Of a stretch of 9,900 nt of DNA, positions 1 to 9,900 are shown one piece after another (positions within the stretch are counted from its first letter, which is position 1; every line of letters starts with the position of its first letter). The DNA comes from Zygophlyctis sp. KS116 (taxonomy: Eukaryota; Fungi; Chytridiomycota). Both the position numbers and the translations under genes were made by a program. Location: assembly GCA_054661495.1 (NCBI GenBank), contig BAAFSQ010000341.1:1-9900 (forward strand), read 5' to 3'. A model generated the notes under the pieces. The model did no database searches, was not told the origin of the DNA, and saw nothing but the letters and a program-made list of their open reading frames with translations.

Positions 1-391
1 TGCTTAATAGATTAAATCAATAGGTAGCAACAATCAGCGGATCTACTCTTGGACGAATCTGGAACTCAGGATTAGTATGATTCATTCGTCCAAGAGTAGA
101 TCTGCTGATTGTTGCTACCTAACTAAAACAATTCAAATACAATTCAATTTTATTGATCTAATTGGTAAGTATCTGCTTAATAGATTAAATCAATAGGTAG
201 CAACAATTAGCAGATCTACTCTTGGACGAATCTGGAACTCAGGATTAGTAAATGAATCATGAACTAAAACAATTCAAATACAATTCAATTTTATTGATCT
301 AATTGGTAAGTATCTGCTTAATAGATTAAACCAATAGGTATCAAAAATTAGCAGATCTACTCTGGGACGAATCTGGAACTCAGGATTAGTA
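1..391. repeat. Tandem repeat block A, ~141-bp unit (about 2.5-3 copies, probably continuing beyond the window start)
   Basis: TGCTTAATAGATTAAATCAATAGGTAGCAACAAT..GATCTACTCTTGGACGAATCTGGAACTCAGGATTAGTA starts at 1, 174 and 315. Spacing 174->315 is 141 bp. The first unit is lengthened by an inverted segment at 84-121. Confidence 0.95.
21..121. repeat. 38-bp inverted repeat (fold-back) with 25-nt spacer
   Basis: 21-58 TAGGTAGCAACAATCAGCGGATCTACTCTTGGACGAAT is the reverse complement of 84-121 ATTCGTCCAAGAGTAGATCTGCTGATTGTTGCTACCTA with one mismatch. Confidence 0.95.
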
Positions 392-695
392 TATGTGATA
401 TTTTTATACATAGAAACTGATAGATAATTTAAAATATAACCAGATGTAATTTTTAATAAAATTTATTTATGACAATGAGATGCAACAAAAACTACGAATT
501 AGAACCCAGAGCTAACAGTTCCCGATTTTATATATATGTATATAATTAATAAAATGCTATATATTACTTCTGTGTCTTCGCCACATTGTAGGTCTGTGAA
601 TTTTCATTCTCACGTTTCGCGTTTCGAACTTTTAAAAAAGTTTAAATAATTTATATTTATTTGATAATTTGAAGCAGGAAAACTATTTCCTCTTC

Positions 696-798
696 ACTGG
701 TGTAAACCAGTTTTTGCACTAGTGAAAGCTAGTCTATTTCCCTGGTGCAAACCAGTAGATTTCGTGGTGAAAACCACTATTACCCTGGTGCAAACCAG
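696..798 (+). repeat. Array of five short hairpins/palindromic sites (5-6 bp stem, GNAA loop), period 21-23 nt
   Basis: ACTGGT-GTAA-ACCAGT (696-711), ACTAGT-GAAA-GCTAGT (718-733), CTGGT-GCAA-ACCAG (742-755), GTGGT-GAAA-ACCAC (764-777), CTGGT-GCAA-ACCAG (785-798). Confidence 0.85.
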
Positions 799-888
799 TG
801 GATTCTTTATGAATCCAGAATTGTTAGAAGGATGAGCTGAGCTCATTCTAGATCATATCCAAGAACTCAAAAACATCAAAAACATCAG

Positions 889-1124
889 TTCAAATACAAT
901 TCAATTTTATTGATCTAATTTGTAAGTATCTGCTTAATAGATTAAATCAATAGGTAGCAACAATCAGCGGATCTACTCTTGGACGAATCTGGAACTCAGG
1001 ATTAGTAAATGAATCAGGAACTAAAACAATTCAATTTTATTGATCTAATTGGTAAGTATCTGCTTAATAGATTAAATCAATAGGTATCAACAGTCAGCAG
1101 ATCTACTCTTGGACGAATCTGGAA
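889..1124. repeat. Tandem repeat block A' (about 2 more copies of the ~141-bp unit)
   Basis: The same unit restarts at 931 and 1061. Spacing is 130 bp because of an 11-nt deletion of one copy of the internal CAATTCAA duplication. Similarity ends at GGACGAATCTGGAA (~1124). Confidence 0.95.
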
Positions 1125-1296
1125 ACTGTAACAATTTTGAACTCATAAATAGGTTAAAAAGTCTAGATACTTTTGTTTATTTTTAAATGAATTTTATTAG
1201 TTAATGAGTTAGTTGTACAGTCATTTTCTTTACAAACTATAATTAAATGTACTTCACATCTTTGAGATAAATTTAACTGTCATCCAGGAGAAGCGA

Positions 1297-2310
1297 ATGG
1301 TAGGGTTTAAAAAAATGTTTTTTGACACTGTAGATCTTGGTGGACCAGAAAAAAGCAAACATGTGTCTGGATTGCTAGAGAATCGTAACAAAAAATTGGA
1401 ATTGGTGCTTTTATTTGGACTTGGCACTCAAGGTTCGTTCGCTATGGATATGGAAACTAGAAGATGGCGTTATATTCGGATAGATGATGTAAATTTAGTT
1501 TCTTCTGCCTACGTTTGTACTGGTCCTTCTATTCTTTATATTTTTGGAGGATATAGTCAATCTTCCCCTTTGAATATTATTTTCAAGTATGATCACAAAA
1601 CAGAGTCATTGTCAGAAGTATATGTTGAAGGTGAATATCTACCTCCTGCTCTCAGTCAGTCCGCAGCGATTCAGTATCTAGGGGATATATACATTTACGG
1701 TGGAAACACTTATGGCGGTTCCAGTGAATATTCATCAGATATGTATAAATTTAATCTACGGAATAAAATATGGCAGAAAGTGAAACATTATGGTCAAAAT
1801 AATCAGCCTCCCGCCGGAAGATGTGGTCATTCAATGAATATATGGGTCAGAAGTTTAAAAAATAAGACCACTCCGTTTCTCGTTATTTACGGCGGATACG
1901 TGAAGTACAATGAATTATATAATGGTCCTGATACAATTATGCTGTATAACATAAGTAAGAGTCAGTTTTAGTTTACAAATAGGTTCCAATAAGTGGATTC
2001 GACCTCATATTAAGAATTTACTAGGAGTTAATCTGATTCGAGCAGATCATATTGCGCTTGTCCAGGGGTGTAATCTAATTGTTTTCGGTGGTCTAGAAGG
2101 AAATATGAAGGAAATGGACCGCAATAAATATGTTAAGCTATCTCTTGGCGCAACATTCTGCCAGGTAAAAGAACAACTTGTGAATGTACTCCCCAGAGCA
2201 GCTCACTCCGTCTCAGTGGCTTTTAAAGATTCAGTTGCCATTATTTATGGCGGACAAATGAATGGGGAATTTCTCAACGAAACAGTAATTCTAGATTTGA
2301 TTTCTTTCCG
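1297..2310 (+). other. Kelch beta-propeller coding region (six blades) of gene 1
   Basis: Six hydrophobic-GG motifs (the first degenerate), preceded by R-x-x-H-type motifs (GRCGHS, IRADHI, PRAAHS) and followed by Y/F..W. Blade 5 lies in the spliced segment 1983-2104 that the ORF track misses. Confidence 0.88.
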
Positions 2311-3763
2311 ACCTATAAATATAAAGGTCAAGTTGGAGAATGGAAATTTTGTGTGGAGTGCACCTTATGATTTAAAAGACACTCAAAAATACACACTTGT
2401 GATAGAAAATATGACAAATCATGAAACTTTAGAAATCGAAACAAGACGAAGATATGTTTCTGTCACAGAACTAAATTTGATAAACGGAATCAGATATGAA
2501 GCTTACTTAATAATCTTTTTAGAAAGTAAACGTCGTGAAAATGGGCCTATCTATAAGTTCGTTTACAATGGTATATTTAGACTTAGTTCACAATAGACCG
2601 CAATCCGCCTGCTCAAAATTTAAAAGCTGTTGTGTCACAAAATGAATCAGTACAAGTACAATGGGATCGATTTCACGCCGATATAAAATACAGAGTTTTT
2701 TACAGGATTTGGAGTCATCTTAAAATTTCTCGGTATTCCAGCCATAACTATGTTCCAGGGACTTGGAAGGAAATTTGGAATTGGGAAGATATAAAAGAGA
2801 GAGGGATATGTAGACTTGAATTGAATCTCTCTAAATTACCTTCAGATGAACTTTATTCTCTCACTCATGACAAGGAAATAGAATTTGAAGTTGAATCGGC
2901 ACGCTGGGATACCAAATCGTATTCATATGTATTTGTTGGTGTGAATCTTCGTTTAGGGATACGAAAAATCGACGATATTTGTTCGTTTATATTTGTCGAT
3001 CTGATACTTTCCGAATTTTTTAATAGTATCACACTGTACTCTAAGAAATTTTTTTTAAAAGGCATGAAATTTTACATTAACCTTATAGAATGTGAATTAC
3101 AAATTAAAATCAAGGATAAAGAGGATTTCGAAATAGTAAAACGTAGAATCAAAAATGGTACAATGGCAGGCATCTTAGATTTAATGAATGAACGACTCGA
3201 GATATTCAGGATTGACAAATACGAGGATAATGATCTACTTATGAAGTAAATGCTGTGTTTAAGCTAATTTTAGAATGATAAAAATGTATCAGGAGATTTA
3301 TAAAAAACCAACATCAGAAAGACCTGGGATACAATTGCGAATAACAACCTTAAATGGTGCGCCTCAGGTGACTGTTTTTTCAGAGGGAGAGTGGAGAAAA
3401 GGATATAATATAAGAAGCTTGACTGGGAAACTGCAGACAATATCTGCGGAGGAAGAGGAGAGCTTAATGGGCTCAAACGATTTCAGCGTGATAATTTCTA
3501 CTAAGAAAAAAGAGACATCGCTGTTGTTTGGCCCCATTCGGCTCGTGAATCATCACTGTACCAAAAGTAATGCATCTGTATGTTCAATTATGTAACTTTA
3601 GATTTCCATTCATCATCCGATTCTAAGGGAAGTTATACTTGTCGCCACAGAAAAAATAGCCAAAGGAAATGAAATATTGACTTTCTATTCTAAAGACTAT
3701 TTTGGGAAAGACAATCAAGATTGTGATTGCTCATATCATAAAAGGTATTTTCAATGCGGTTAA
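1297..3763 (+). CDS. Spliced gene: Kelch-repeat + 2x FN3-like + Set9/Suv4-20-like SET-domain protein (~786 aa)
   Basis: Exons 1297-1954, 1983-2570, 2597-3245, 3274-3577, 3602-3763 (alternative end: intron 3745-3774, stop at 3808). Each GT-AG junction restores frame between consecutive ORFs. Kelch motifs: VLLFGLG, LYIFGG, IYIYGG, LVIYGG, LIVFGG, IIYGG. FN3-like: FVWSAP..Y.L..L.NGIRYEAYL and PPAQNLKAVVSQNESVQVQWD..YRVFYR. SET: NDFSVIISTKK..LLFGPIRLVNHHC and IAKGNEILTFYSKDYFG.DNQDCDCSYH. Confidence 0.85.
1955..1982 (+). other. Spliceosomal intron, 28 nt
   Basis: GTAAGA...ACAAATAG. Removal gives LYNISSNKWIRP..IRADHIALVQGCNLIVFGG, in frame with ORF 2105. Confidence 0.9.
2571..2596 (+). other. Spliceosomal intron, 26 nt
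   Basis: GTATAT...ACAATAG. Removal gives VYNDRNPPAQNLKAVVSQ, in frame with ORF 2632. Confidence 0.88.
3246..3273 (+). other. Spliceosomal intron, 28 nt
   Basis: GTAAAT...GCTAAT.TTTAG with a branch-like GCTAAT. Joins LLMK to MIKMY (ORF 3275) in frame. Confidence 0.88.
3578..3601 (+). other. Spliceosomal intron, 24 nt
   Basis: GTATGT...GTAACTTTAG, containing the in-frame stop of ORF 3275. Removal restores the SET C-terminal motif and post-SET CxC. Confidence 0.9.
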
Positions 3764-3972
3764 TCAAATATTAGTGAGCTTAAAACAAGAGAAAACATTT
3801 CTGGTTAAAAATAAAAGATAAATAATTGCGTAGATCATTAATCTGAAAACCTTATGTTGTCTAGTTACTAATTTTTATTACTGATTTGTGACATAACGTT
3901 TCTCTAGGTTGAGGAAGAATCAGAAATAAACACCTAACCAATGTAGGGTTAGTATTTTTGTATTTCTGACAA

Positions 3973-4368
3973 ATGAAGCAACCGAAACAATCCATCGGAT
4001 CAAACTATAATAGAAGGTCTTCAAATGATAGAGCCCGAATCCAGCTGGCTGGAGAGGATCATCGTACATTGTTACTTCGTTTGATTGAACATTTAAGAGC
4101 AGCCGGAGTGGTCAGAGAAGTCGATCATATTCCTTGGGACCGACAAGCGAATGAATTTACTTTCGCATATATAAGGATGGTTAGTAGTGAGCATGTTTCT
4201 GGTATGATTAGAATGGCTCAAACATTTCGTGACGTAAGACATTTAATCTAATATAAGGCACTGGAAAGCGTTCGAATCAATGAAAGGGATATAACTGTTC
4301 GAAGAGCACCGACTAGACTCAGACCGGGCCGCAATCAAAGAGCAGAACTCAAAAAGACAAAAGAATGA
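3973..4368 (+). CDS. Small RRM-like putative RNA/ssDNA-binding protein, spliced (~123 aa; 5' end uncertain)
   Basis: Exons 3973-4233 and 4258-4368. RRM-like order of elements: RIQLAG (b1), LLLRLIEHLRAAG (a1), VREVDHI (b2), FTFAYIRM (RNP1-like), helix ..DALESVRINERDITVRRA (b4), then an Arg-rich tail. Confidence 0.6.
4234..4257 (+). other. Spliceosomal intron, 24 nt
   Basis: GTAAGA...TCTAAT.ATAAG. Contains the stop of ORF 3973, and removal completes the RRM-like fold. Confidence 0.8.
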
Positions 4369-4408
4369 ATTAACAAATACATTTTACTTTAACAATCATA
4401 TGATTATA

Positions 4409-4449
4409 TTTCGTGGTGCAAGCCACTGTTCACCTGGTGATAACCGGTG
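4409..4449 (+). promoter_or_regulatory. Second copy (two hairpins) of the 696-798 motif array, ~105 nt upstream of gene 3
   Basis: TTTCGTGGT-GCAA-GCCACTGTTCACCTGGT-GATA-ACCGGTG aligns with TTTCGTGGT-GAAA-ACCACTATTACCCTGGT-GCAA-ACCAGTG (760-800). The regulatory role is inferred from position only. Confidence 0.55.
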
Positions 4450-4553
4450 ATTATTCCCCTTATTTTGAGCTGGGCTTATTCTTATACTTCGACCCATAGA
4501 ACATATCACTGTGCTCCTAACCATTCTAGAATTTTTTTACCTTATTTTTCAAA

Positions 4554-7500
4554 ATGATCAGATGCAGTAATTGTAAGAATCAATTTTCTACAAGAAGTGA
4601 GAAAGATCGACACTATCGTGTTTCTCACACAAACATGATCACAGTCGATAAAGTAAAATATTATAGAAATTCTATTACAATGCATTTCGAATGCAAGAAA
4701 TGCAATGGAAGTTATAGAGATCCAAAGAATTTGAAAGAGCACCTAAAAAAAACTCAATGTGCTAAAGAAAACTCTCTTGAAGAAGATGTTACTGAAAAAG
4801 GAACTCCAGTTGTGCAAAGTATGCTTAAGTCTGTGGAGTCACCTCAATCTCACAAATATTCCCAATCTTTGTTGCCATTATCGCAACATTTTTTAACCAG
4901 TAGTATCTCTGTCTTACAAGAAGAAATTCAATCGATGAATTCTGATAATAATACAACAAATAGGCCTAAGGAAAGAATCATGAGTGAACAATTTGAATCT
5001 AATCTGTCTATTGAATCTTATCAAGATCTAGAATCTAGAAAGTTGATACCGGTTCAAAGTACTCAATCTTGGGAAAACAATGTTTCTACTGAATCCTCCC
5101 CAAATCTAGGACAAACACACATCGCCAGTACATCTAAAACTGTCTCGGTGGAATTTTCAGATGATTTAAGAATTAGCCAATTTGATAAAGTTGGTATGGT
5201 TGCTAAACGAATGAGATCTGCAGCAGATGATAATGTTGTGACGCCCAAACAAATGGGTAAAAAAATATGTTCCTCTTCAGAAGCAATATCAAGCATATTA
5301 GATACAAATAATTCTATAGAAATGAAAGATGCGAATCAATCGTTAAATTCTTCTCCATTACAAAGTTTCACTCGTTCTCCCATATTTAAACTTACGGCTA
5401 ATCATTTCTCAAAAGGCAAGAAAGGCTCCATTAAAGGCTGTTGTGAGCCCGGGACCAAAAAAACAAGTAATTTCTAGAAACTTAACTTTAGATAAGAGTG
5501 ACCTAGAGAATAACATATTAAAATTTAATGAGACAGAGCTAATTATCATGTTTAATATGGGTTTATTCAGTTATGTGAATAATGATAGTCAGAGATGGAT
5601 AAAGATTTTATCTTCACACACAATCGAGAGACTGAAGAAAATTAATATAGAAAAAGAAATCATCTTGATAGGTAAAAATAATGTTGCACATCCAAATCTA
5701 AAAAATCTTTTGGTAAAAGACCTTGTGGAAAGAATTTTGGGTCTTATCGATTTAAGTGCAGCTGTCTCGTTTATTGTTAAAAAAGTTGGTCATCATAACC
5801 CGACAAATGAATTTAAAACTATATTTGCAGACCAAAAGGAATACATCAAACGCCATGTTATCAAATTAATCGATAATGTTCAATCTAGTGCATCTTATCG
5901 AAAATCTATGCTGGAGGCCTTGAATGCTTTATCTTTCAATACCGCAGAGGAATGTGACCTTCAAATTAAATTGTTAAAAAAAAAGGTTCCTATCATCTCT
6001 CATATTAAAAAAGAAAATGTGGAAGATGACACGACTATTGATTTGAAGAAAAAAAGTAAATTTAATCATTAAACTTTAGTTTGTGCTTACGCAAATGATG
6101 TTATACATTCTGAAGATGAAACTTCCAACTATTCTTCAGCGCCCCTCTCGCTAGAAGACGAATCTGAAGACTATGACTCTCTTGATGATGAAAATGGTAA
6201 GTGTTTAACAATTTAATCAGCTAGATATATCTGAAGTTTTGAAAGAGATGAAACAGCAGCAATGGCAAGAACAAATACTCGAGGATAAAAAAAAAATAGC
6301 CAATTATATCATTAACACTGATACACAAAAAACAAATTTAACTCAAGGATTATCCTACGAAGAGGTAGCTTTTTTTCTACGGGCGAAGGCGGTTTTCCAT
6401 CCAGCACCAAAAACAGATATCGAGTCGATTACCTTCACAAAATTCGTCCTGAATCTTTATGAATCGTTTGCTTCCCAAGATAATTTCTTTTAAACACACG
6501 TTATTGATGGACGTTTATGGATTTGCAGGATATATCTTTTTCCCCAGGTTACAAATAGATCAAAGGAAATGGTCAAACTATAATAACATGATGATCAATG
6601 ACGATTATCATTTCTTTATTGAAGAATTACTACTACCATGTATTCAAAGACTTAAACCCGATGGGACATTTCCTGATAATGTGAAATGTAAAAATCAATT
6701 CAAAGGAAATAACCGGAACAGTTTTAATGCTATTCAGCTACCTGTAGAAATATTTCATAAGGTTGTACAGGAAATGCGAAAAACCATTTCTTTACAACAA
6801 GACGAAAAAATGGAGCAATTTAAAGATTTTTTTTTTCATTTTCAGTCTATTGGGGTAAAGAATATATACAAGGGTGAAAAGAAAGACACTATTGATAAGC
6901 TTATAAATGTTTTGGAGAACTTTGTAAATGTTGATTGCGACGTAAAGGAATATTATGATATTGGTATCGAATTTTATTATGAAAACCTGGAGGAAAATTA
7001 TACCCTCTTTTGGTCTCAAGATGGAGCTGAGGCTCTTCATAATGGGCTTGATCTTCGTGGTAGTGTCACACGCACGGGTACCATGTACTCCAACGATCTC
7101 TTAGGTATTTTTACCCCGATTATAATATGTAAGGAATGGTCATCAAAAATCCTGACGCTAAAACTACGAACAAAAAATGGATATTCTGTCAAATGTATCA
7201 AGGTTTAAAAAACGCAATACAAACACCAGATAATATAAAGCGGTACGAGCCTCGTGAAGATGATTTTTTGGGGAAAACTCCCAAACATGTTTTTGAATAT
7301 CTAGCTATGGTCAATGGATTTTTAATCGGGAAGAAGGCAGTAAAGAATTACCCGGCCAGGTATGAAATACGAGTAAGAGGTCATAAGACGGCTCTAGCTT
7401 GTCTCGCAAAAGGCGAAAAACCAGATATCAAGTTTCATGTTTCACCTACATATTTAGTTTTAAAGTATTTGAGTCAGATCTCAGACATTTGGAGGTATAT

Positions 7501-9028
7501 TTTTACGAATGCACGCTTAATGCATTGCTCTGGCCCGCTAAGAAGAGATTTCCTAAAAATTATCAGGATCTCACTGTTAAGCCTTTTTAGAGGTTGGGAA
7601 TATGTAACAATCAAAGACAATTCAGTCGAGAAAAAAGATAAAGTTTTTCTTGGTATTCAAGATAGTATAAAAAATTATTCATTCCCATATATAGACTCAG
7701 AATTGGTAGATTTCAAACAATTACGATTTAAAGATGTATTAGACGAAACTCTCAAGTCAAGTTTTGACGAAGATTTACCTTTTGGATCAACAATTCCGGA
7801 TTTTATTGATAAAAATTTAGAGGAAGAGGCATTGCAACTTTACCAATATTTTAGAATGATATGGAATGAAGAACATCCCATTAAAAAGATTGCATATTTA
7901 CTCAATCAATCCGCTCAACAAACTATTTTGAAATCTATTCCAAGCTCGTATATCCGTCAAGTTTCAAAATCCATAAACGGTTATAGTATCTCCGATTTAG
8001 AAATGACTGTAAATTTGCAGATTAATTTTCGAAATCTTTCCTCTATTCATCTATTCGATACTATTTATGCAACCAATCTACATACAACGCATTGGTGGAA
8101 TGCTTCACTACACAACCATTTTTATAGGTATTTTATGAAAATGTTCAAGACCAGAAATACGCCAAAGGTTGCAGATTCATTGGATCTAGAGCTGCAGATA
8201 CTTATATGCGACTGGGAATTTTTTCCCTACATACAAAGTGATCGAATATGGGGCAATTGTGATGCTGAAAAAAATATTCTGAAGGCTTTTGTTGTAGAGG
8301 ATCTTCAGAATACAAAAATAGAACTCGTAAACTCTCAAAAAAAAAAACCACGCGCATTGGATTCTAAAAATATTGCTGAAAGTCTATTTAAATTGTTTTT
8401 ATTAGATATCTGGTCAGATGTAGATCAATCAGTCATGGAATATAGTCGAATTCTTCCCGAGAAAACAAAACTTTCGAGAAATCCTAATTTAACTTTATCA
8501 GATTTAATGGAATCATTTGAACTACAGTTTTTAAAGAAAATTGCTTTTCCGGGTGCGTACGTGAAGGTTACTAAGAAATCCAAAACCTGGAGTCAACGAT
8601 TTGACCATTTTTTTCCTTATCCTGTGGCTAACGAGTGGGATAAATCTCTAATAGGAAAGAAAAAATATGCCCTTAGATGGAGGGAGATAATCGCAGCACA
8701 TGAACAAAAGATTATAGTTAAAGTCATTCCCGAACTTTTCTCTCTTTTTCAAAAGCTAGAATGGTTTCCAAATCATCAAGGATTTCAGTCTTTTTGGAGA
8801 AAAAACAGAACAAGCATACATGACTATGATTTAATAAGGAAAAAAGATTTTGGAAAACAAGTACCGCTTATGGAGGAGAAACAATTACCAGTCATAGATG
8901 ATAGAGTTGTTGAAAAAAGAGCTTACACATCTCCAGTTGCTTATGAAACGATGAATGCTGGAGAATCTCATTCTGACAAAAACCTTAATAAATGGAAAAG
9001 TACCTTATATCCGCCAGAAAAAATGTAA
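4554..9028 (+). CDS. Large spliced gene (~1,450 aa): two N-terminal zinc fingers, Ser-rich linker, acidic patch, uncharacterised core, duplicated Trp-rich C-terminal module; one unresolved frame break (~6450-6493)
   Basis: Exons 4554-5466, 5492-6055, 6080-6196, 6225-7104 (with a +1 frame change or a weak 34-nt intron 6446-6479), 7134-9028; possible extra exon 9054-9180. Fingers: CSNC-x12-HYRVSH and CKKC-x12-HLKKTQC. Confidence 0.7.
5467..5491 (+). other. Spliceosomal intron, 25 nt
   Basis: GTAATT...CTTAAC.TTTAG. Its length (3n+1) converts the frame of ORF 4554 into that of ORF 5443 (KKTNKSDLE). Confidence 0.82.
6056..6079 (+). other. Spliceosomal intron, 24 nt
   Basis: GTAAAT...ACTTTAG. Contains the stop of ORF 5443, and reading continues through an acidic exon (ICAYANDVIHSEDE..DDEN). 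Confidence 0.82.
6197..6224 (+). other. Spliceosomal intron, 28 nt
   Basis: Consensus donor GTAAGT...CAGCTAG. Gives ENDISEVLKEMK, in frame with ORF 6239. Confidence 0.88.
7105..7133 (+). other. Spliceosomal intron, 29 nt
   Basis: GTATTT...ATGTAAG. Joins NDLL-G to MVIKNP (ORF 7136) in frame. Confidence 0.8.
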
Positions 9029-9177
9029 TTTATTTAGTTCGATTTATAACAAGAATTTTCAAATACCCTGTGGAGAGTGGAACCTTTGATCACCAAATAT
9101 ATGCTCAAAGCGCTTTATATAAGTGGTTCTGGGCCTGGACAGGTTGGTACCAACATGTTAGATATATTCTACAGCTA

Positions 9178-9270
9178 TGAAATTTGGCATACATGTTGAT
9201 CATATTGAAGAGAACTTTAGTACCAAATTTCAGGTCAATCGCGTAAAAACTCCCCGAGATAACAGCCTTG
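9178..9270. mobile_element. Helentron/HINE (DINE-1)-like inverted-repeat motif preceding the minisatellite
   Basis: TGAAATTTGGCA (9178-9189) and TACCAAATTTCA (9221-9232) form an 11/12 inverted match, followed by GGTCAATCG..CCGAGATA and then GGAC/AGAC-containing tandem repeats. The family assignment is from recalled resemblance only. Confidence 0.35.
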
Positions 9271-9840
9271 AAGCAAAATCCGGACGCAGACCCTAGTTTT
9301 CCGGACGCAGACCCTACATTTCCGGACGCAAGCCCTAGTTTTCCGGACGCAGACCCTAGTTTTCCGGACGCAAGCCCTACATTTCCGGACGCAGGCCCTA
9401 GTTTTCCGGACGCGCAGGCCCTAGTTTTCCGGACGCAAGCCCTACATTTCCGGACGCAGGCCCTAGTTTTCCGGACGCAAGCCCTAGTTTTCCGGACGCA
9501 GACCCTAAGCAAAATCCGGACGCAGGCCCTAGTTTTCCGGACGCAAGCCCTACATTTCCGGACGCAGGCCCTAGTTTTCCGGACGCAAGCCCTACATTTC
9601 CGGACGCAAGACCTAAGAAATCCGGATGCAAGACCTAGTAATCCGGATGCAAGACCTACATTTCCGGACGCAGACCCTACTTAAACTTCAAAATATAAGT
9701 ATTTTTTTGATTTGTCCAACTTTAAATTCAACTAGACCCTACATTTCCGGACGCAAGACCTAGTAATCCGGATGCAAGACCTACATTTCCGGACGCAAGA
9801 CCTACATTTCCGGACGCAAGACCTAAGAATCCGGACGCAA
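9271..9840. repeat. GC-rich 21-bp minisatellite, ~24 units, interrupted at 9681-9733
   Basis: Unit CCGGACGCA(GA/AG/GG)CCCTA(GTTTT/CATTT), with later variants CCGGA(C/T)GCAAGACCTA. About 19 units at 9280-9680 and about 5 at 9734-9840. Confidence 0.97.
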
Positions 9841-9853
9841 GGTTAGGGTTAGG
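9841..9853 (+). repeat. Short telomere-like tract GGTTAGGGTTAGG
   Basis: About two TTAGGG units directly abutting the last minisatellite unit. Confidence 0.55.
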
Positions 9854-9900
9854 AATTAAGATTTTATTAATTTTTCTTTTTTTAACCAGGTCTTATATTT

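Follow-up and report, generated by a model that had tools for sequence, protein, structure and literature searches.

Genes and flanks of the contig

We analyzed contig BAAFSQ010000341.1 of the chytrid Zygophlyctis sp. KS116 (assembly GCA_054661495.1), hereafter C341, on which three genes lie between repeats: gene 1, which encodes Kelch repeats and a SET domain; a short open reading frame (ORF), termed gene 2; and gene 3, which begins with C2H2 zinc fingers (Table 1). The whole stretch of DNA that was analyzed, 9,900 nucleotides in length, is called the window. A genome search placed it at G000:C341:1-9900, where G000 denotes the source assembly, and C341 measures exactly 9,900 bases; the window is thus the complete contig. 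The source assembly is AT-rich (~33% G+C) and comprises 12.7 Mb in 1,175 contigs. A sequence-only reading of the window had proposed a selfish unit of three genes with terminal repeats of its own, in which gene 3 supplied the replication or mobility protein.

All three genes lie on the + strand, which bears out the co-orientation described in that reading; frame checks were made for genes 1 and 3. The introns in all three are very short (24-29 nt), start with GTA and end in TAG or AAG. Database searches were run exon by exon; spliced proteins were joined only in a local script for the reading-frame checks. An Rfam search of the window returned no match.

A search of the genome with window positions 9040-9290 gave matches on at least 14 contigs, every one of them starting sharply at window position 9112-9117. 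On contig C385, a 1,008-aa ORF that contains a reverse transcriptase (RT) domain (RVT_1, E 2.1e-28) has the right-flank sequence immediately past its stop. Past the stop of the RT ORF, the tail with its CCCTAA-like dimer comes first and the head, which ends the element, comes last; tail, minisatellite, and head occur in the same order after the C-terminus of homologous RT ORFs on contigs C590, C471, C745, and C137. The sharp common end, together with the continuity with the 3' end of the RT ORF on five contigs, identifies positions 9113-9900 as the 3' untranslated region (UTR) of a long interspersed nuclear element (LINE). The right flank is a LINE tail, either 5'-truncated or cut by the end of the contig, and the sharp boundary at 9113 belongs to the LINE. 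The 21-bp minisatellite described earlier at this end was recovered by Tandem Repeats Finder (TRF) at 9279-9679 and 9738-9841; the inverted repeat described with it came down to a 12-nt palindrome at 9139-9158. A TTAGGG-like dimer (9842-9856) lies within the LINE UTR, has a counterpart at the corresponding position of internal LINE copies, and therefore does not mark a telomere. Neither end of C341 carries a telomere repeat array.

The 21-bp minisatellite of this UTR is expandable, with 0 to about 24 units between copies. The UTR ends sharply in ...CCACTTATATAA, and a two-unit CCCTAA motif lies right after the ORF (window 9113-9900; L013 (C385), 3394-3493).

At the left end, TRF detected a 141-bp tandem repeat at 121-395 (2.0 copies, 96% match), and two further units lie at 886-1164. 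A partial unit is present in inverted form, as a pair of 38-nt arms (21-58 against 84-121). These repeats, the hairpins that accompany them (689-804), and a hairpin motif common to the regions 5' of genes 1 and 3 had all been described from the sequence, and all were recovered: the two-hairpin module at 759-800 recurs at 4408-4449. Off C341, the paired-hairpin pattern did not occur in the genome at the stringency used. Pieces of positions 1-1000 (the units, 396-490, 664-726, and 795-966) recur solely at C137:7968-9013, where they are rearranged, lie between LINE tails, and are not accompanied by genes 1-3. The repeat finder found no terminal inverted repeats joining the left and right flanks, and defined shared termini with target-site duplications, as in Class II DNA transposons, were likewise not found. 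The possibility that the left repeats are part of the LINE in the right flank was rejected; they show no similarity to the LINE-bearing loci.

Because the window is a complete contig, repeats at both of its ends are to be expected and are not a property of any element. A short contig ends where the assembler met repeats that it could not resolve, so that any short contig will look "repeat-bounded", and this appearance alone says nothing about an element.

Table 1. Features of the 9,900-nucleotide window (C341)
Feature	Position	Strand	Remarks
Gene 1, Kelch beta-propeller and SUV420H/KMT5-type SET domain	1297-3763	+	5 exons (1297-1954, 1983-2570, 2597-3245, 3274-3577, 3602-3763); 786 codons open in frame check
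Gene 2, 92-codon ORF, function without assignment	3973-4251	+	May run on through a short intron
Gene 3, 5' part: C2H2 zinc fingers and variable region	4554-6493	+	620 codons open; TAA at 6491-6493; introns 5467-5491, 6056-6079, 6197-6224
Gene 3, 3' part: remainder of the putatively Rep_trans-like alpha/beta domain and large helical C-terminal domain	6459-9028	+	846 codons open from ATG at 6459; intron 7105-7133; motifs FKH 6489-6497, YYDIGIEF 6951-6974, QMYQGLKN 7190-7213, ARYEIR 7355-7372
Junction of 260-bp deletion, 4-bp microhomology	6488-6491	+	From alignment to strain contig L049
Left repeat region	1-1164		141/130-bp units at 129-418 and 886-1164; C341 begins within a unit (TRF, repeat finder)
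Hairpin array, short 5-bp-stem GNAA-type	689-804	+	TRF and repeat finder
Two-hairpin module, second copy of 759-800	4408-4449	+	105 bp 5' of the gene 3 ATG
LINE (non-long-terminal-repeat retrotransposon) 3' UTR, antisense insertion	9113-9900	-	Begins 85 bp past the gene 3 stop; C341 ends inside; head 9113-9260, 21-bp minisatellite 9279-9841, tail with CCCTAA-like repeats 9842-9887

Copy number and gene order in relatives

In protein-level searches, the gene 3 core, the first exon of gene 3, and gene 2 were each found as one intact copy in the genome. The SET exon of gene 1 is present as one intact copy and as a paralogue of 42% identity on contig C83. The same gene order at several loci, which the sequence-only reading would have predicted, was not found; what does occur elsewhere are decayed, partial fragments on contigs C385 and C437. 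On C385, window positions 1492-1800 (84% identity) are fused directly to positions 3461-3594 (93% identity; L013 (C385), 7344-7757). This fragment of gene 1 includes intron sequence and was therefore copied as DNA. On C437, pieces corresponding to 4025-4122, 4540-4596, and 5057-5230 are in their original order at ~80% identity (L015 (C437), 671-1099); they include the one decayed fragment of gene 2. Both contigs consist of transposon debris: C385 carries a LINE and a retroviral-type integrase fragment, and C437 hAT-like and Copia-like pieces recognized by eye. The decayed co-linear fragments on the two contigs show that the segment was duplicated at least once.

Two Logan contigs from other runs, 97.9% and ~98.2% identical to the window, are colinear with positions 2517-5114 and 4701-7165, respectively, which shows that the gene order is stable among close strains. 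The more distant metagenomic relatives, L011 and L021, share 40-60% protein identity, and neither gene 1 nor gene 2 was seen on these two contigs. In L021, a zinc-finger gene, here called gene X, precedes the gene 3 homologue, and a Ulp1-like protease gene, of which the contig shows the start, comes after the homologue (L021, 5460-5570). In L011, the gene 3 homologue is followed by Ulp1-like ORFs (4073-4903; Peptidase_C48, E 2.8e-4) and then by gene X. The gene trio is not conserved beyond close strains.

Gene X carries the C2H2 5' module of gene 3: the two modules are ~93% identical within L021 (19-429 against 1504-1809), and the 5' module of the L011 gene X (5066-5896) is 41% identical to that of gene 3 in the window; the C-terminal part of gene X differs. 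Judged from their sequences, gene X and the gene 3 homologue look like tandem paralogues with a common 5' module. In a genome search, gene X was absent from the present genome, and Ulp1 gave a single match, not beside gene 3, to a gene of 36% identity located within C34, a large contig. The intron at 7105-7133 coincides with a break in the L011 ORF at the same place, which suggests a conserved intron. The L011 contig, too, ends in a short tandem repeat (5962-6123), which, on the minus strand, reads as peptide repeats of the FCVTNP type.

The gene 3 family

An exhaustive profile search against 1.84 billion (1.84e9) representatives returned 13 proteins for the gene 3 family, all of them metagenomic and without names; the family was seen only in this lineage and in a handful of freshwater metagenome contigs. 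It is a very rare, undescribed, lineage-restricted family of proteins of ~1,500 aa, composed of N-terminal C2H2 fingers, an alpha/beta domain of ~370 aa, and a helical domain of ~450 aa. The N-terminal finger of gene 3 was matched by the Pfam zf-C2H2 model, in agreement with the zinc finger noted earlier. One homologue, P0013, is 1,849 aa long; its SIR2 domain spans 262-460, and the gene 3 core makes up the last ~850 residues (about 1000-1849). P0013 is encoded by L022 (JGI 3300049811), 88-5637, from an organism with 44% G+C. A scan of metagenome contigs with the gene 3 alignment found no locus.

Apart from C2H2, and SIR2 in P0013, searches of the gene 3 exons and homologues with Pfam, PHROGs, and PADLOC gave nothing. 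The Rep_trans model, PF02486, had no match in the gene 3 exons or homologues, nor anywhere in the genome at E<=1. The KDZ transposase domain with its CxC clusters, as well as DDE and integrase models, had no Pfam match in exons or homologues at E<=1 or E<=0.01, and neither a Helitron HUH Rep nor an SF1 (superfamily 1) or Pif1-type helicase was matched by Pfam in any exon or homologue. A sequence profile search of the PDB with gene 3 gave no match.

AlphaFold prediction from the 630-aa gene 3 exon, using a three-sequence alignment, had a predicted local distance difference test (pLDDT) score of 33 and gave no usable model. For the uninterrupted 883-aa homologue P0016 (21 sequences), the mean pLDDT was 67.5, and the model resolves an alpha/beta domain clearly (residues ~30-400), followed by a C-terminal half that is helical. 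The top structural matches of the domain were Rep_trans chains, with scores below the level that proves homology; the next chains spanning most of the domain scored 4.4 (START-like, fewer than 100 residues aligned) and 3.3-3.4. Foldseek found no match in the PDB at E<=1e-3, and RepDE was ranked 42 with an E of 1.5. Searching the ESM Atlas by features and by shape gave no usable match for gene 3.

The active site of Rep_trans enzymes comprises D46, R140-x-D142-x-A144-x-D146, R189-x-Y191-x-K193, and R212-x-E214, and the metal ligands D46, D142, and E214 each lie on a separate strand (PMC4797284). We recovered this series from the sequences of six plasmid Rep_trans proteins. In the gene 3 family, four motifs are invariant wherever a member spans them, and their arrangement along the protein follows that of the Rep_trans active-site residues: DIDSISFT (P0016 positions 38-45), Y-x-D-x-G/A-x-E-F (245-252), Q-x-Y-x3-K-N/T (318-325), and A/V-R-x-E-Y/I-R (372-377). 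Three of the four lie on modelled strands of P0016 with a pLDDT of ~87. Relative to Rep_trans, the three carboxylates, the tyrosine, and one arginine are kept, two arginines are lost, and the lysine is shifted. An hhalign comparison of the family with the six plasmid proteins was not significant (P=0.63); its local alignment paired gene 3 motifs 2 and 3 with RLDLAFD and RIY.

The deletion in gene 3

The copy of gene 3 in the window is interrupted by a 260-bp deletion. Window positions 4701-6491 correspond to 1-1791 of the strain contig L049, and positions 6488-7165 to 2048-2724 of the same contig; the 5' part of the gene is colinear with L049 at 98.3% identity. The intact strain allele is a single ORF of 409 aa (P0021). 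The deleted segment amounts to ~86 codons, including the DIDSISFT strand, and is kept in L011, L012, P0005, P0013, and P0021. The loss of 260 bp, a length not divisible by three, shifts the frame, and a stop is reached at 6491-6493. A 34-nt "intron" (GTCCTG...AAG, 6446-6479) that would bridge the change of frame was rejected, because its removal would take out conserved parts of the coding sequence and because comparison with the strain contig reveals a simple deletion of 260 bp.

The 846 codons downstream of the junction are still open, and the strains diverge by only ~2%; the lesion is therefore recent, or confined to one haplotype, or an assembly error. On these sequences, this copy of gene 3 may have become a pseudogene recently, may be a split gene, or may represent a single haplotype. 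Between the strains, gene 3 shows 18 non-synonymous and 17 synonymous differences, and its ratio of non-synonymous to synonymous polymorphism (pN/pS) is ~0.26.

Genes 1 and 2

The Kelch repeats of gene 1 were detected by Pfam with an E of 1e-18. Exon 4 matched human SUV420H2 (E 4.9e-8), and SUV420H2/H1 (KMT5B/C) were the top matches of exon 5 (E 0.017). The alignments of exons 4 and 5 span the NHxC motif and the C-terminal cysteine motif, the family-specific SET features of SUV420H/KMT5. Of the Kelch-FN3-SET architecture proposed from the sequence, the Kelch and SET parts hold, the latter as an SUV420H-type domain, and FN3 was not detected by Pfam. Exon 3 (215 aa) had no family match, its sole hit being the strain allele. 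The pN/pS of gene 1 against the strain contig is ~0.2. In the alignment of exon 4 (window 3275-3577) with strain contig L039 there is a 1-nt gap.

The SUV420-like SET gene on C83 (G000:C83:23088-23273, L048) is 42% identical to gene 1 exon 4 over 63 residues and may be the canonical SUV420 orthologue. By sequence, gene 1 is classed as a second, divergent SUV420-like paralogue with a predicted SET domain of the SUV420H type (H4K20 class).

Gene 2 is an unsupported orphan ORF. It had no Pfam match and no relative within the related loci, and the ESM Atlas gave leads only (0.77); the RRM-like character assigned to it earlier was not borne out. Its pN/pS between strains is ~1, a value based on just five differences, and gives no sign of constraint. 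A relationship of gene 2 to gene X of the distant relatives was rejected, since the two show no similarity.

Interpretation

C341 probably carries nuclear genes of an ordinary kind, with introns, from a repeat-rich region of a small chytrid-like genome, rather than a delimited mobile cassette. The selfish three-gene unit of the sequence-only reading is not supported by the ends and contents of C341: the right end is a LINE tail, the left repeats occur on C137 without the genes, terminal inverted repeats are missing, each gene has one intact copy, and the trio is not conserved in the more distant relatives. Most of what that reading had named as refuting it was thus observed, in that the intact genes occur once each and the repeats occur independently of them. 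No conserved synteny with housekeeping genes was demonstrated; the trio itself is conserved in close strains only. The ends of the contig would be the places where the assembler stopped, on the right in a multi-copy LINE 3' UTR and on the left in the low-copy region of 141-bp repeats and hairpins that is also present on C137. The pieces on C385 and C437 would be the remains of an older duplication at the DNA level, decayed among transposons.

Several points weigh against this interpretation. Fragments of all three genes occur elsewhere in the genome, which would not be expected of a purely static locus. The copy number comes from a fragmented assembly able to collapse repeats. The 260-bp deletion may reflect heterozygosity or an error of the assembly. 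As to gene 3, R140 and R189 of Rep_trans are not conserved in the family, and the lysine is displaced by two residues.

For the alpha/beta domain of gene 3, a Rep_trans-type ancestry is a tentative assignment to which we give somewhat less than an even chance. With the same reserve, the domain could best be pictured as a metal-dependent tyrosine DNA-nicking or DNA-binding module of Rep_trans-like build. The metal would be held by three carboxylates on separate strands, the invariant tyrosine would attack the DNA, and the zinc fingers would target the module to DNA. In the copy in the window, the deletion would remove the first carboxylate strand and shift the frame. The role of gene 3 as a replication or mobility protein thus survives in weakened form: Rep_trans remains the best match and the series of motifs stands, the scores stay below proof of homology, and this copy is broken.

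Gene 3 might instead encode a non-catalytic DNA-binding or chromatin factor of the host, whose extended beta-sheet would bind DNA together with the C2H2 fingers in the manner of a TBP-like saddle; the resemblance to Rep_trans would then be one of shared sheet architecture only. The top matches in a viral library, which were weak (E about 1e-2), were large subunits of early transcription factors and a TFIID/TBP-like protein, and both the SIR2 fusion in P0013 and the adjoining SET gene in the window suggest a chromatin context. However, invariant D, D/E, Y, K, R, and E residues on separate strands are typical of an active site and not of a saddle, and TBP chains were not within the top 50 PDB matches. 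We regard such a factor as somewhat unlikely.

A nicking family could also be more than a host module. Gene 3 would then belong to a eukaryotic Rep_trans-type (non-HUH) family of tyrosine nicking enzymes with C2H2 fingers, joined to SIR2 in one relative, and would either initiate fungal rolling-circle elements of a class not yet described or descend from such an initiator by domestication, with the local hairpins as substrates. We think this rather unlikely. If true, eukaryotes would possess a second way, independent of HUH enzymes, of processing DNA in rolling-circle fashion, or would provide a case of its domestication. We know of no report of a Rep_trans-type enzyme in eukaryotes, although no literature search was made for one. 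The intact gene 3 allele in the 98%-identical strain makes the nicking idea directly testable.

In its narrower form, in which gene 3, alone or with its neighbours, initiates an undescribed rolling-circle-type element of eukaryotes that is low in copy number and uses a Rep_trans-like tyrosine nuclease, the idea is improbable. Such an element would be nicked, or have its origin, at the hairpins near 4408-4449 and 689-804; the window would carry a recently inactivated copy, and the fragments on C385 and C437 would be dead copies. The rank of the Rep_trans chains in the structural comparison and the co-linear, active-site-like invariant motifs are consistent with such an element, as are the hairpin module just 5' of gene 3 that matches the one at 759-800, the internally deleted co-linear fragments within transposon-rich contigs, and an inactivating deletion of a kind typical of transposon decay. 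Ulp1-like proteases often accompany DNA transposons, and one adjoins the gene 3 homologue in two relatives. Against this stand a single intact copy here and one per contig in the relatives, a family of only 13 representatives among 1.84e9 proteins, and a lack of helicase, shared termini, or target-site duplications. The conserved intron position and the pN/pS of ~0.26 resemble those of a host gene, no hairpin module was seen by eye 5' of the homologues in L011 and L021, and homology to Rep_trans is itself unproven.

A subtelomeric, segmentally duplicated region, with the repeats as subtelomeric satellites and the fragments as paralogous chromosome ends, is very improbable: the TTAGGG-like dimer, the minisatellites, the LINE fragments, and the decayed duplicates on short, repeat-rich contigs would fit it, but the dimer sits inside the LINE 3' UTR, at the same place as in internal LINE copies, and no telomere array ends C341.

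Comparison with known systems

The right flank itself does not differ from known LINE 3' ends; the minisatellite and the telomere-like dimer inside the UTR are features specific to this family. Gene 1 shares with the SUV420H/KMT5B-C (Set9) H4K20 methyltransferases the SET core and the C-terminal cysteine motif, located in exons 4-5, and differs from them in having a Kelch propeller and an unassigned region of ~215 aa ahead of the SET domain.

KDZ/Plavaka, Zisupton, Ginger1, and Mutator-like elements (MULEs), which are associated with Ulp1, resemble the present system in a zinc-chelating N-terminus, in the Ulp1-like gene that adjoins in two relatives, and in a chromatin-enzyme neighbour. In contrast to these transposons, the C341 block has no KDZ, DDE, or integrase match and no terminal inverted repeats, and it is not multi-copy. 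With Helitrons it would share the idea of a tyrosine nuclease, and it resembles them in the hairpins close to its genes and in the captured or decayed pieces of genes at other loci; unlike Helitrons, it has no HUH Rep or Pif1-type helicase detectable by Pfam and no defined termini, and it is present as a single intact copy.

The Rep_trans (PF02486) initiators and MOB_T relaxases, such as RepC/RepD of pT181 and RepSTK1, differ from gene 3 in several respects. The gene 3 domain is ~150 residues larger, and the equivalents of R140 and R189 are Y/F and Q. Gene 3, a eukaryotic gene with introns, encodes C2H2 fingers and a helical domain of ~450 aa, and no replicon or element context was shown for it. 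What the two have in common is a series in which a carboxylate strand comes first, followed by a DxAxD-like strand, then a Tyr-Lys motif, and finally an RxE strand, and the closest known architecture to gene 3 is that of the Rep_trans nicking enzymes of Gram-positive plasmids, phages, and conjugative elements.

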